A stretch of 64,000 nt of DNA, taken from NCBI GenBank assembly GCA_002269645.1, contig NIVC01001526.1:124001-188000 (forward strand), given 5' to 3'. The notes below the pieces were generated by a model, which was not told where the DNA came from, did not search any database, and was given only the letters and a program-made list of their open reading frames with translations. A program made the position numbers and the translations under genes. The stretch is from Macrostomum lignano (lineage: Eukaryota). Positions 3,871 to 31,868 of the stretch are shown here, piece by piece (the first letter of the stretch is position 1; each line of letters begins with the position of its first letter).

Positions 3871-6800
3871 ATGTCTTCGGTTCAAGAGCTGGTCAATCTA
3901 AAGAAGAAAGCCAAGAGAAGGTGTCGAACTGGAGGAGTAAGTGCTAGCAATTATTTGCACCTGACAGCCAGCTGTGTAGAGCTGTACTGAGGGGCAGTAT
4001 AGTCATAATGGTAGACCATTTAGCAGCATACGATACTACCTGGCAAACAGTTTGTAGTATTGGGAAAAGTGTGTTCACGTCTGTCTGTCTATGAGAAGTC
4101 GGAGCCGCTGTCGCCTTGTGTCAGTGGGATTCGCTCGTAGTCAAGACTGCCTGCAACTGTCACCTTGAATTTGCGGCACTTCTAAAAATTACTCTTAAAA
4201 CTCGCGAATCCTAGGACACATCCTACCAGGCCGTCGACACTGATGACGACTGCTTCTCGAACAACAGCGCCGAGTTCAACTCGAACGAGTGCCTGAGCTC
4301 CGGCCACGGGCCGGCGGTTCACCGAGCGGCCAAAAGCGATTCGATAACTGGCGACGGTCGCGAAGCTGCCTCAACTGCTGGTCGACACGATGAAGCTGAG
4401 ACAACCGCCTTTGCGGCGGCGGCCGGCCTCCCAGATGCCTCGTCGACCGTTGAAGTCGACGAAGATGCCGATGCAGATGACGGGCAGCGAGGAGGCGACG
4501 AGCTTCAACAATTGACAGACGCGGCGAGGTCGTTGAATCCGACCGCACGGTTGATCGAAGCTCTGGAGACGCTCAGAGACTCCATCAACGACAACACCAG
4601 CGTGGCGCTGCAGCAGACTCGAACTCGAAATCGACGACGGGGCACCTCGTCTGGCCAGGTCAACTACAAGAGCAGCGCCTTGAAGAGCGACGAGCGCTGC
4701 CGAATCCGCTCGGAGAAGGTCAGGGGATGGGGAAGCCGGGGGATGGGAAATTCGGGGATGGAGAAGTCAGGGGATGGGGAAGTCAGGGGATGGGAATTCG
4801 GGGATGGGGAAGTCAGGGGATGGGGAAGCCAGGGGATGGGAATTCGGGGATGGGGAAGTCAGGGGATAGGGAAGCCGGGGGGTGGGAAATTCGGGGATGG
4901 GGAAGTCAGGGGATGGGGAAGTCAGGGGATGGGAATTCGGGGATGGGGAAGTCAGGGAATGGGAAGTCACTTTCCAATGACGGGGAAATCGGGGATGGGG
5001 AATTCGGGGATGGTAATTCGGGGATGGGGAAGTCAGGGGATGGGAATTTGGGGGTGGGGAAGTCCAAGGACAGAGAATTCGGGGATGGAGAATTCGGGGA
5101 TGGAGAAGTCAGGGGATGGGGAAATCGGGGATGGGGAATTCGGGGATGGGGAATTCGGGGACGGGGAAATCGGGGATGGGGAATTCGGGGATGGGAAGTC
5201 AGGGGATGGGAAGTCAGGGGATGGGAAGTCAGGGGATGGGAAGTCAGGGGATGTGGAAGTCAGGGGATGGGAATTCGGGGATGGGGAAGTCAGGGGATGG
5301 GGAATTCGTGGATGGGGGATTCGGGGATGGAGAAGTCAGGGGGTGGGGAAGTCTGGGGATAGAGAATTCGGGGTGGGGGAAGTCAGGGAATGGGAAATTC
5401 GGGGATTGGGAAGTCAGGGGATGAGGAAGTCAGGGAATGGGAAGTCAGGGGATGGGAAGTCAGGGGATGGGAAGTCAGGGGATGGGAATTCGGAGCTTTG
5501 AAGCTACACCCAAAGCGTTGGGGCAGTTAATTGAAAGTCCGTGCTGATTAACAGTTTTTCAATCAATTGATTTATACAAGCAAGCCTCTGGAGGAAATCA
5601 AATTATAGGTAGAGGATATGCAAATTTAAAATCGCTTTTCAGCTTTACATTGTAAGTTTCTGAAATGCTAGTTAAAAAAGAACTGCTTTTGACAGCTCTG
5701 AGTTCGGTTCCTGTCATTGCATTTTCCTGTAATTGCATCTTCTCGAATTCTACAGCTTTTTGACTCATCCTTTTTGAAAAATGAAATATGCTTGAGGCAG
5801 TCCCCAATGACCAATGACTCATTTAGACAGTGCCAGTCCCCAATGACCAATGACTCATTTAGACAGTGCCAGTCCCCAATGACCAATGACTCATTTAGAC
5901 AGTGCCAGTCCCAATGACCAATGACTCATTTAGACAGTGCCAGTCCCCAATGACCAATGACTCATTTAGACAGTGCCAGTCCCCAATGACCAATGACTCA
6001 TTTAGACAGTGCCAGTCCCCAATGACCAATGACTCATTTAGACAGCGCCAGTCCCCAATGACCAATGACTCATTTAGACAGTGCCAGTCCCCAATGACCA
6101 ATGACTCATTTAGACAGTGCCAGTCCCCAATGACCAATGACTCATTTAGACAGTGCCAGTCCCCAATGACCAATGACTCATTTTTACAGTGCCAGTCCCC
6201 AATGACCAATGACTCATTTAGATAGTGCCAGTCCCCAATGACCAATGACTCATTTAGACAGTGCCAGTCCCTAATGACCAATGACTCATTTAGACAGTGC
6301 CAGTCCCCAATGACCAATGACTCATTTAGACAGTGCCAGTCCCCAATGACCAATAACTCATTTAGACAGTGCCAGTTCCCTATGACCCATTTAGACAGTG
6401 CCAGTCCCCAATGACCCATTTAGACAGTGCCAGTCCCCAATGACCAATGACTCATTTAGACAGTGCCAGTTCCCTATGACCCATTTAGACAGTGCCAGTT
6501 CCCAATGACCCATTTAGACAGTGCCAGTCCCCAATGACCAATGACTCATTTAGACAGTGCCAGTCCCCAATGACCAATAACTCATTTAGACAGTGCCAGT
6601 TCCCAATGACCCATTTAGACAGAAACATACTCGCTGACGCATTGTAAAACCGCCAATTCTCAGGTGGTGGTGGAGATCCGAGTCGTATTCCTAAAGATCG
6701 GCGAGATCGATACTCTGAAAGAGCTTTATCACGCTGACGCCTTTATTCAAGCGAAATGGAAGGAACCGCTGCTCGAGGGTCGAAGTCCCGAGGTAAGCAA

Positions 6801-30800: not shown

Positions 30801-31868
30801 TCCACACTCGAATAGAATAGACATGAGTCATGCATGATGAGTTGGAATCAACGAATAGCTGACTTAGTTTGAATTTAAAACTCGACAGATAGACTTTTTT
30901 TAATGCGTTGGATATATTTTCCAATTTTTTTGGAAAACGGTTGCGACCGAAGAGAAGCAGTCGTCATTAATGTGGGTGATAGTCAAAATTTCATGACAAT
31001 GACTTTGAATCCGTCATTATGTTTTTACATAAGTTAGAAGCATCTGTAAAATGAATCTGTTGCTCGCATGCACTCTAACTACCCCAAAATTTAAGTTGAC
31101 ATAGTTCAAAGATTTTTATTGATAAGTCCATTGAAATTGTCTAATACAGGGGTACGCAAATGTAGTTTGAGCACTTCCAGTAAACAATATCTGATTGGCA
31201 CGAAAGTTATTTTACGATTCCAGAATATTCCACTTTTACTTGCCCCCGAGTTCTACAGCCAGGGCATCCGCCCTGAATTGATAACCCCGCTGTACAGAAA
31301 AATGTTACACTCAATAAACTTGTGGCAAAGTAAAACGATTTCCCGACAATCAGATGATTATTAGCTACAGCTATTGTGCCCAAATGCACAACGATCAACG
31401 ATCACAACGACCAAAATGCACAAATGATCAACGATCAAACCAATCGTTGAAGGTATTGATCTGCAGTAAAATTAAAAGCTTGCTACTTACAGGAATTATT
31501 TCGCAAACGTGGAGGGTAATTTGAAATCATTTTATCTTTTCGTTTCATATTTCGTTTCAAAATCTAAATTCCTTACTCTCTAATCGCGCGCGAATATCAC
31601 ACTTCCTTTGATTACAAGGATTTGCTACCATGTCGGTTTGCTCTGCGTTACCTGCAAATTACGAGTAGATAATACATATATAGTTACATTTTTCGGCTAG
31701 TTTTAACTAACCAATGTAAAACTTTATCCTAAATTTCAGAACAAGATCCAGTTTTACCAGATGGTCGAAACGCATGGACGAGCAGCCAAGAGGAAGAGCT
31801 CAACACCGATGGAGCTGATGAAGAATAGACACCATCATCCCAGCACAGGCGACAGCACAGCCAACTGA
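3871..31868 (+). CDS. Cys-less (Pro-loop) pentameric ligand-gated ion channel subunit, ~602 aa; join(3871..3936,4215..4718,6664..6792,14305..14505,15640..15897,[21895..22050 OR 22121..22276],27652..27969,28271..28318,31740..31868)
   Basis: All exons are bounded by GT-AG, all introns are phase 0, and all exon lengths are multiples of 3. The translation shows pLGIC motifs: VEIRVVFLKIGEIDT..ADAFIQAKWKEP, YWNPLIYIDN, loop 7 FLETLELNDFPLDVQDL (no Cys), QQEWRL, pre-M1 ARRPGYFYWNVFLIM, M2 RLxLSFTLxLTSV, LP(K/R)ISYLTYMDKY, M3 and M4. The core exons (6664-27969) are secure. The first two exons, the start codon and the last exon are less certain; the frame is also open upstream to a possible acceptor at 3764. 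Confidence 0.9.
4719..5497 (+). repeat. G-rich compound repeat (gggaagtcaggggat / gggaattcggggat)
   Basis: Starts exactly at the exon-2 donor; dense GGG(G) runs. Confidence 0.95.
5798..6622 (+). repeat. 36-bp minisatellite (cagtccccaatgaccaatgactcatttagacagtgc)
   Basis: ~23 copies; ends ~40 nt before the acceptor at 6663. Confidence 0.96.
7446..11226 (+). repeat. 38/39-bp satellite (tagactagcaatccattctaatc[attatt|gttatcc]catgtaaac), ~3.8 kb
   Basis: About 100 copies in two length variants, with higher-order block duplications. Confidence 0.97.
12289..12886 (+). repeat. 18-bp minisatellite (atggtcaaaacaccgtct)
   Basis: Direct periodicity. Confidence 0.96.
13700..14170 (-). pseudogene. Possible decayed hAT (ZNF862-like) transposase fragment
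   Basis: Broken frames give AVNHRLDL (cf. CxxHRLEL), ..YTNNSKRS and GMRWISHRLRAI (cf. GTRW..H..RA); motif spacing is longer than expected. Confidence 0.35.
14718..15540 (+). repeat. 34-bp minisatellite (ctattgtctcaatgacattcagagagagtgttca)
   Basis: Direct periodicity; fills most of the intron 14506-15639. Confidence 0.96.
16765..21699. mobile_element. Non-autonomous hAT (Charlie-like) element enclosing a (GGAGA)n array
   Basis: Left end CAGGGGTCAGCAAACT; right end reverse-complements to CAGGGGTTGGCAAACT (14/16). Flanking 8-mers ATACAGAG and AAATAGAG match at 6/8 (degenerate TSD). Sub-terminal CGGGCCGGA occurs at both ends. Confidence 0.75.
16990..21640 (+). repeat. (GGAGA)n polypurine array, ~4.6 kb, with GGCGA, GGGTA and GGGGA variants
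   Basis: Direct reading; almost no pyrimidines on the + strand. Confidence 0.98.
21895..22050 (+). CDS. Channel M1-M2 exon, variant A (FFITGLSFATFAVGADKPESRLQLSFTLFLTSVAFKFVINQSLPKISYLTYM)
   Basis: CAG acceptor and GTGAGA donor; 156 nt, phase 0/0; paralogous to 22121..22276. Confidence 0.9.
22121..22276 (+). CDS. Channel M1-M2 exon, variant B (FMISGLSFATFAVEPNKCEYRLRLSFTLVLTSVTFKYVVAQSLPRISYLTYM)
   Basis: Pyrimidine tract with CAG acceptor and GTAAGG donor; 156 nt, phase 0/0; 38/52 aa identical to variant A with many synonymous differences. Confidence 0.9.
22438..22938 (+). repeat. (TCTA)n microsatellite, ~500 bp
   Basis: Direct reading. Confidence 0.98.
23624..24680 (+). repeat. Degenerate (TCAA)n microsatellite interrupted by the SINE
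   Basis: Blocks at ~23624-24060 and ~24455-24680. Confidence 0.9.
24060..24436 (-). mobile_element. tRNA-derived SINE with a (TTGA)n-type tail, embedded in a (TCAA)n microsatellite
   Basis: On -, A-box-like TAGCCCAGCGG (24418-24427 region) and B-box GGCTCGATTCC (24374-24384), a ~300-nt body, then simple repeat; no tRNA acceptor stem. Confidence 0.7.
25113..27620 (+). repeat. 22-bp minisatellite (gacctgtt[aga|atg]caggagag[ctt|cct|tct]), ~2.5 kb
   Basis: Period 22 with largely alternating variants; ends ~30 nt before the acceptor at 27651. Confidence 0.97.

Follow-up and report, generated by a model that had tools for sequence, protein, structure and literature searches.

On a 64,000-nt stretch of Macrostomum lignano DNA (called the window in the following) we assembled a gene on the + strand between positions 3871 and 31868. 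Judging from its sequence and predicted fold, its product is a subunit of a pentameric ion channel of the ligand-gated type (pLGIC) from the metazoan 'Cys-less' (ELIC-like) clade. The reading that we consider probable is an inverted one: N- and C-terminus would both lie in the cytosol together with the ligand-binding domain (LBD), and gating would take place from the cell interior. To our knowledge a signal peptide and an extracellular or periplasmic LBD are common to every characterised pLGIC, whereas no signal-peptide-like segment is present in the window protein or in approximately 165 of 169 evaluable homologues from at least six phyla. Furthermore a basic motif following the fourth transmembrane helix (M4) is kept in 66 of 67 aligned members, and lysine and arginine residues accumulate on the LBD side of the membrane. 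[quoted passage not shown] A sequence-only reading of this locus had proposed that the 'extracellular' domain and the C-terminal tail are cytosolic, which is supported here by sequence statistics and by the rules of membrane-protein biogenesis. Its cytosolic LBD is thus upheld, but residence in an organelle, which it offered as another option, would by itself not remove the need for a signal peptide.

Gene structure and channel fold

The gene consists of nine exons and its product has 602 amino acids (aa). All introns are GT-AG introns in phase 0. The features of the gene are as follows:

3730..3732, + strand: in-frame TGA 5' of the ATG, from the sequence and the table of open reading frames (ORFs)
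3871..3936, + strand: exon 1, ATG plus 22 aa (MSSVQELVNLKKKAKRRCRTGG), hydrophilic and basic, no signal peptide
4215..4718, + strand: exon 2, 168 aa of the N-terminal extension
4236-4289, + strand: acidic tract in exon 2 with a degenerate FFAT-like EFNSNE
4539-4637, + strand: predicted helix in exon 2, aa 131-163
4626-4652, + strand: basic RNRRRGTSS in exon 2, aa 160-168
4692-4718, + strand: basic ERCRIRSEK in exon 2
6664..6792, + strand: exon 3, beta-1 and beta-2 of the LBD (VVVEIRVVFLKIGEIDTLKE...AKWKEP)
14305..14505, + strand: exon 4, loop A (YWNP) to the first half of the Pro-loop
14473-14505, + strand: LELNDFPLDVQ in exon 4, first half of the Pro-loop, cysteine-free
15640..15897, + strand: exon 5, remaining LBD, C369, pre-M1 and first half of the first transmembrane helix (M1)
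15844-15867, + strand: pre-M1 CRAARRPG in exon 5
21895..22050, + strand: exon 6a, second half of M1, M1-M2 loop (GADKPE), M2 and M2-M3 loop
22121..22276, + strand: exon 6b, tandem duplicate of 6a with equal length and phase
27652..27969, + strand: exon 7, M3, M3-M4 loop and M4
27655-27723, + strand: M3 in exon 7
27724-27900, + strand: M3-M4 loop in exon 7, aa 463-521
27751-27759, + strand: NAT sequon in the M3-M4 loop, aa 472-474
27820-27852, + strand: Cys pair CLLQGETGEPC (Cys-x9-Cys) in the M3-M4 loop, aa 495-505
27901-27966, + strand: M4 in exon 7
28271..28318, + strand: exon 8, conserved basic post-M4 motif ACRRRREMHKKDREYK, predicted helix continuous with M4
31740..31868, + strand: exon 9, distal tail followed by the stop codon
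31788-31808, + strand: KRKSSTP in exon 9, aa 577-583, candidate basophilic-kinase or 14-3-3-like site

The nearest database protein is P0001, also from M. lignano, which is 97% identical and has the same start Met. Its model runs through exons 6a and 6b in series and stops at 473 aa within the second copy. The truncation results from splicing these alternative exons one after the other; the database entry is a mis-model and the gene itself is not truncated.

The LBD is recognized by PF02931 (Neur_chan_LBD) at aa 186-354 with 34.1 bits against a cut-off of 26, while PF02932 alone stays below its threshold (18 vs 28.1 bits). In an AlphaFold2 monomer model built on 67 sequences the predicted local distance difference test (pLDDT) is mostly above 90 in the LBD and the transmembrane domain. 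Beta strands extend over aa 191-373, and helices comprise aa 375-398, 404-428, 434-462 and 505-579. GABA-A, 5-HT3A and glycine receptors are the best Foldseek matches to this model in the PDB (E approximately 1e-18), with about 360-400 columns aligned to the full-length receptors and a TM-score to the target of 0.55-0.68. By sequence the best PDB match is ELIC (E 9e-23), and M2 aligns with ELIC M2 residue for residue. The loop-B position of ELIC, which we take to be aromatic, aligns with a non-aromatic segment of the window protein.

Two hallmarks of the superfamily, the F/YPxD of the Pro-loop (F295, P296 and D298 of FPLD, aa 295-298) and the pre-M1 arginine (R373 and R374), are invariant in the 67 aligned sequences, and so are F199, K201, T207 and W222 in exon 3. 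In total 55 positions of the LBD and pre-M1 (aa 186-377) are conserved in at least 85% of the 67 homologues. The Pro-loop LELNDFPLDVQDLTITI is divided between exons 4 and 5 (LELNDFPLDVQ|DLTITI) and contains no cysteine, in agreement with the earlier description of a cysteine-free loop 7. The Cys pair that flanks loop 7 in Cys-loop receptors is absent from the window protein, and across the 67 homologues the LBD has a single conserved Cys (C369) and no conserved Cys pair. Its median net charge is -12. The M2 segment PESRLQL with the acidic E at -2' is as expected for the Cys-less clade. We assign the protein to this clade on the basis of such features and of the grouping of its homologues with lophotrochozoan and flatworm sequences rather than on a tree. 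Superfamily membership predicts a pentamer around a pore lined by M2.

Absence of a signal peptide

Signal peptides were detected with a crude Kyte-Doolittle hydropathy score using windows of 19 and 9 residues. The 190 aa preceding beta-1 of the window protein contain no hydrophobic stretch (best 19-residue mean 0.69). Within the first 40 aa the best 9-residue mean is 0.43, as compared to 2.1-3.4 for the signal peptides of the ELIC family. The sequence-only reading had reported the missing signal peptide for one open frame at 3733-4718; the absence holds, but this interval joins two frames across the intron at 3937-4214. Its charged N-terminus of about 190 aa was found as described, with KKKAKRR at aa 11-17, acidic stretches and RNRRRGTSS at aa 160-168.

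The same protein could have canonical topology and an extracellular LBD if an upstream exon encoding a signal peptide had been missed. Invertebrate gene models often lose short 5' exons, and only 3.87 kb upstream of the gene lie within the window. The TGA at 3730-3732 closes the reading frame 5' of exon 1, and a scan of window positions 1-4214 gave no plausible signal-peptide exon. A 15-aa candidate at 3233 (MDIIIIINAFIIKVE) was rejected, having no basic n-region.

The question of a missed exon extends to the homologues. Alignment A1 comprises the window protein and 66 homologues from flatworms, annelids, nemerteans, rotifers, molluscs and a brachiopod, including many RefSeq models and one transcriptome ORF marked as complete. 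In A1, 65 of the 67 sequences are free of a hydrophobic segment before beta-1 (best 19-residue hydropathy below 1.1). A profile search against 1.84 billion cluster representatives yielded 677 proteins at E 1e-30 or better. The best 150 of these 677 (down to E 1e-66) all belong to the family; 128 were new and 102 had an evaluable N-terminus. In this wider set 99 of the 102 show no hydrophobic N-terminal segment and three were flagged. Whether the whole clade lacks a signal peptide had been named earlier as one check, and both sets answer it with yes.

Hydrophobic N-terminal stretches in P0007 and P0029 (A1) and in P0270 (wider set) speak for a missed exon. Those of P0007 and P0270 lie upstream of the start Met of their relatives and were discarded: in P0007 the stretch belongs to an AT-rich leader upstream of the Met that aligns with the Lineus RefSeq start, and in P0270 to a leader read-through preceding the Met at which the relative P0278 starts. 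The flag of P0029, an old Capitella model, stands. Among the remaining flags of the wider set P0168 was rejected as a fused gene model and P0282 is borderline. Trematode and cestode orthologues share the start M[SA]INFNKLF (MSINFNKLF), which argues that the annotated starts are the true N-termini. The Met region is likewise conserved, as MLFSRIAL / MISSRSLL, in Lineus P0014 and the related transcript-derived P0007. Several rotifer members begin only 1-11 aa before beta-1. A missed exon would also leave the basic tail and the acidic short M3-M4 loops unexplained. Since the absence is found in many and varied independent models and transcripts, we regard a missed exon as unlikely.

An amphipathic helix (xRLIxALExLRxxI) is located 30-40 residues before beta-1 and is conserved in most subfamilies (pLDDT approximately 92, corresponding to aa 131-163 of the window protein). 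Several rotifer proteins do not possess it. The helix could serve as a vestibule cap, a coiled coil or a partner-binding site.

Basic tail and charge distribution

According to the sequence-only reading a tail of 58 aa follows M4, and this is the case (aa 545-602): it begins with ACRRRREMHKKDREYKNK and includes KRKSSTP. Its question whether the clade keeps the basic tail is answered with yes by the motif [KR][KR]R[RW]xMxxKDxEY, which 66 of the 67 A1 members share, from rotifers to molluscs. In the structural model the tail helix runs on from M4 up to residue 579. In the clade the tail measures 52 aa in the median and has 7 lysine or arginine (K/R) residues (median) among its first 20 positions, as compared to a median of 2 aa for the entire tail in ELIC proteins.

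As a control we used 43 natural ELIC-family proteins, in which the LBD is known to be periplasmic. Here the same crude score detects a signal peptide in 38 of the 41 proteins that were scored. When K+R is summed over the loops, the animal clade has a median of 11 on the side of the LBD and of 3 across the membrane; the ELIC family, with 4 and 5, shows the reverse tendency. The short M3-M4 loops of the animal clade are acidic (median net charge -1), and those of the ELIC family are at +2 with a K/R median of 5. According to the positive-inside rule the K/R-rich side of a membrane protein is cytosolic. Together with this rule the observed bias points to a cytosolic location of the LBD side in the animal proteins.

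The charge distribution also bears on a second way to retain canonical topology, in which M1 serves as an N-out (reverse) signal-anchor for translocation of the whole N-terminal domain, with no cleavable signal. Export of the N-terminus in the absence of a signal peptide does occur in some multi-pass proteins, among them many G-protein-coupled receptors, and in other respects the fold is that of an intact pLGIC. This mode of insertion is known for N-tails that are short, unfolded and weakly charged; the N-terminal part considered here comprises 180 to more than 370 aa, folds into a beta-sandwich and carries RRR clusters beside M1 (CRAARRPG), and the K/R bias is opposite to what N-out insertion requires. 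We know of no precedent for translocating, without a signal peptide, an N-terminal domain that is long, folded and bordered by arginine clusters, so M1 should insert with the N-terminus in the cytosol. In view of the size and charge of the N-terminal part, N-out insertion appears quite improbable.

Two further observations concern the tail. C546 (28274-28276) stands directly before the post-M4 polybasic run (AC-RRRR, PC-KKRR), and an aligned Cys is present in 21 of 67 sequences. A juxtamembrane Cys beside basic residues is the usual context of S-palmitoylation, which takes place on the cytosolic face, and the context of C546 would fit such a modification. In the rotifer homologues P0068-P0090 the tails reach approximately 140 aa with the conserved end ...SGDIEAMTMKQFRMGSLGC, the last residue being Cys in most of them. 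This end may represent a lipidation or interaction motif.

Candidate kinase sites, sequons and a FFAT-like motif

In the distal tails RRx[ST] occurs 15 times as compared to 2.3 times in shuffled sequences. Sites of this type are used by cytosolic kinases. They are conserved within subfamilies, as SRR[TQ]ST in Owenia, Capitella and Lineus, as KKRRQS in gastropods and as KRKSSTP in the window protein.

Inserts of the M3-M4 loop are S/T/P-rich in parasitic flatworms and several other lineages, and they contain more N-x-S/T sequons than expected from their composition (43 vs 24 in A1, 36 vs 25 in the wider set), some of them conserved among cestodes. P0170 and P0204 carry threonine runs. Although the effect is modest, such inserts fit a lumenal or extracellular loop. 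For the window protein itself the NAT sequon and the Cys pair had been put forward; both are present in the M3-M4 loop, but they are conserved only in the Macrostomum paralogue.

These inserts are also relevant to a location of the protein outside the secretory pathway, for example in a mitochondrial membrane, where a basic amphipathic N-terminus would be the targeting signal and the rules of the endoplasmic reticulum (ER) would not apply. The window protein is indeed basic within its first 20 aa (KKKAKRRCR), and cestode N-termini (MAINFNKLFLQNLLPK...) are poor in acidic residues. The N-termini are, however, not conserved as presequences: many become strongly acidic soon after the start, and the rotifer members that begin next to beta-1 have no presequence at all. 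S/T-rich, sequon-bearing M3-M4 inserts are better suited to the secretory pathway. With N-termini that are unconserved and often acidic or nearly absent, non-secretory targeting is very unlikely. A decaying copy whose odd ends carry no meaning, as might be suspected from the introns full of minisatellite arrays and from the truncated model P0001, is practically ruled out by conservation, since the 602-codon frame is intact over nine exons with canonical splice sites, many LBD and pre-M1 positions are conserved, the odd features are themselves shared by different phyla, and the truncation of P0001 is an artefact of serial splicing.

At a homologous N-terminal position P0004 (Owenia), P0014 (Lineus), P0007 and P0011 contain an acidic tract followed by [DE]NFYDA[SP]xE or DYFDAPAD. 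The cores NFYDASE, NFYDAPQ and DYFDAPA are FFAT-like. The FFAT consensus E-F-F-D-A-x-E binds the ER-resident protein VAP on the cytosolic face (PMC7610837). VAP clients are characterised by such a core behind an acidic tract, located on a cytosolic segment and bound by the MSP domain of VAP. The motif of these four proteins comes close to this pattern and makes them candidate VAP clients.

Weighing of the proposed inverted topology and its mechanism

A number of observations weigh against a cytosolic LBD. We know of no pLGIC with this arrangement. The 15 aa before M4 are also basic in the window protein (KHLRRMEMVNKIEKD) and in other flatworm members, in line with an earlier caveat regarding basic residues in the M3-M4 loop; the M4 flanks alone therefore leave the orientation undecided and the case for the window protein leans on the family. 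Approximately one in four proteins of the wider set has a tail of lower basicity. The charge difference across the M1 flanks was dropped as evidence because the ELIC family shows the same value. The sequences are related, so that P values from shuffles and rank tests overstate independence and the contrast between clade and control is a qualitative one. Sequons in the LBD are depleted in A1 (15 vs 60 expected) but hardly so in the wider set (86 vs 101), and this depletion was set aside as a main argument. In the N-terminal regions sequons occur at chance rate. Finally, the window protein itself has only a degenerate form of the FFAT-like motif (EFNSNE).

Taking both sides together, we still favor the inverted topology. 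In this model the N-terminal part of approximately 370 residues, consisting of the acidic/basic extension, the helix and the beta-sandwich LBD, would be made and folded in the cytosol, since in the absence of a signal peptide it should be finished and folded before M1 leaves the ribosome. M1 would then act as a signal-anchor that leaves the N-terminus in the cytosol, M2-M4 would follow and the basic C-tail would remain cytosolic. The M1-M2 turn and the M3-M4 loop would be the sole parts directed toward the outside or the lumen of an organelle. A ligand or partner in the cytosol would gate the channel, basophilic kinases could regulate the tail at its RRxS/T sites, and the polybasic juxtamembrane helix may contact acidic lipids of the inner leaflet. 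With its E at -2' and an ELIC-like M2 the channel is probably cation-selective. Johnson et al. likewise infer cation selectivity (PMC9874803).

For the clade as a whole we lean, by a small measure, towards a more extended proposal: the entire conserved clade would be inverted and would consist of cation channels gated by intracellular ligands, perhaps tethered by an FFAT-like motif at ER contacts, tuned by PKA-type kinases and switched by the choice of a pore exon (Q/R at 2').

All pLGICs investigated to date, be it in bacteria or at human synapses, sense ligands on the outside, and a conserved clade with its sensor on the inside would be the first topological inversion in the superfamily. Such an inversion would account for the fact that the 'Cys-less' animal channels can do without a disulfide, and would point to an unknown intracellular ligand. 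Agonists applied from the outside would be doubtful activators and delivery of ligands to the cytosol would be worth trying.

Relation to known channels

Metazoan 'Cys-less' Pro-loop receptors have been described by Jaiteh, Taly and Henin 2016 (PMC4795631) and schistosome members by Johnson et al. 2023 (PMC9874803). Like these, the window protein is devoid of the Cys-loop cysteines, has no second Cys-loop, keeps FPxD and has an acidic residue at M2 -2'. The clade is distributed over Platyhelminthes and other Spiralia, and schistosome homologues are among the top matches of the window protein. No structural difference separates it from this published family, and only the topology reading is new. 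In PMC9874803, as far as its account of the clade extends, the LBD is called extracellular and the M2 -2' position cytoplasmic. The term 'signal peptide' is absent from the text of PMC4795631, and the descriptions of the clade in the accessible parts of both papers make no mention of a conserved basic post-M4 tail. Two later preprints root their trees with the Cys-less clade, and one of them calls the function of the clade unknown. In a full-text literature search that covered few subscription journals we found no publication on the missing signal peptide or on an inverted or cytosolic pLGIC topology.

By sequence the closest solved structure is ELIC of Erwinia/Dickeya chrysanthemi, which has a Cys-less Pro-loop and E at -2' in common with the window protein. 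M2 and the M2-M3 region are very similar (RLQTSFTLMLT..ILPRLPYTT in ELIC, RLQLSFTLFLT..SLPKISYLT in the window protein), and most members of the clade share the short M3-M4 loop of ELIC. The two groups differ as follows: the gammaproteobacterial ELIC relatives have Sec-type signal peptides (38/41), a K/R-rich M3-M4 loop and an end about 2 aa after M4, none of which is found in the clade. Instead the window protein and its clade are extended at length on the N-terminal side, where a helix is included, and their tail is long and basic.

With the canonical Cys-loop receptors (GABA-A, glycine, 5-HT3A and nicotinic receptors) the window protein shares the fold, the pre-M1 Arg, the Pro-loop proline and the four-helix transmembrane domain. 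In canonical receptors a signal peptide is present, a disulfide closes the Cys-loop, the extracellular LBD is glycosylated, the M3-M4 domain lies in the cytoplasm and the short C-terminus is extracellular. The window protein appears to differ in all five traits, as far as topology can be deduced from its sequence.

If inverted, the channel would resemble CNG/HCN channels, IP3 and ryanodine receptors and KATP channels in having its ligand-binding side in the cytosol, without any homology to them. A further analogy concerns Kv2 channels, which bind VAP via a phospho-FFAT (PMC7610837). The FFAT-like motif of the orthologues recalls the VAP-binding motif of Kv2.1, again without homology, and it is in the orthologues rather than in the degenerate version of the window protein that this likeness is seen.

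Vertebrates lack the Cys-less clade, which does occur in schistosomes and tapeworms. For planarian homologues, expression in mechanosensory neurons as well as phenotypes upon RNA interference are reported in PMC9874803. Taken together, this makes it relevant for anthelmintic targeting which side of the channel faces outward.

Alternative pore exons

Exon 6b is 73% identical to exon 6a at the protein level, and the two are presumably mutually exclusive. Exon 6a has E at -2', Q at 2', L at 9' and F at 16' of M2, and exon 6b alters pore-lining residues with R at 2', T at 13' and Y at 16'. Corresponding pairs of 156-nt exons were found at two other loci:

L002 32824-32979 and 33019-33174: exon pair of the M. 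lignano paralogue
L003 55710-55865 and 56072-56227: exon pair of the annelid Owenia fusiformis

Within each pair 2' is occupied by Q in one copy (RLQLSF) and by R in the other (RLRLSF / RLRLAF), and positions 13' and 16' are changed as well. Besides the window gene, the pair occurs in the M. lignano paralogue and in Owenia fusiformis, in the opposite order. Its presence in the paralogue and in Owenia implies that it is either old or recurrent. The choice between exons 6a and 6b could switch conductance or selectivity.

Surroundings of the gene and intronic repeats

At the locus of the M. lignano paralogue (L002) a gene for the mitochondrial pyruvate carrier (MPC) is located at 199-636, approximately 9 kb upstream of the channel gene. 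In the window we recognised no counterpart of this ORF on the upstream side of the channel gene, and Pfam scans of four further long ORFs in the window gave no match.

Introns 2-5, the gap between exons 6a and 6b and the intron between 6b and 7 consist mostly of long tandem arrays with periods of 4-66 bp:

4719-5493: tandem array
5798-6611: tandem array
7437-11226: tandem array
12289-12891: tandem array
14717-15545: tandem array
16884-21640: tandem array
22439-22938: tandem array
23640-24059: tandem array
25121-27616: tandem array

Among them are a GAGAG-type repeat of approximately 4.8 kb and a 38-bp minisatellite that extends over 3.8 kb. The first base of intron 2 (4719) is also the beginning of one array, and the splice donor therefore lies within the first repeat unit.

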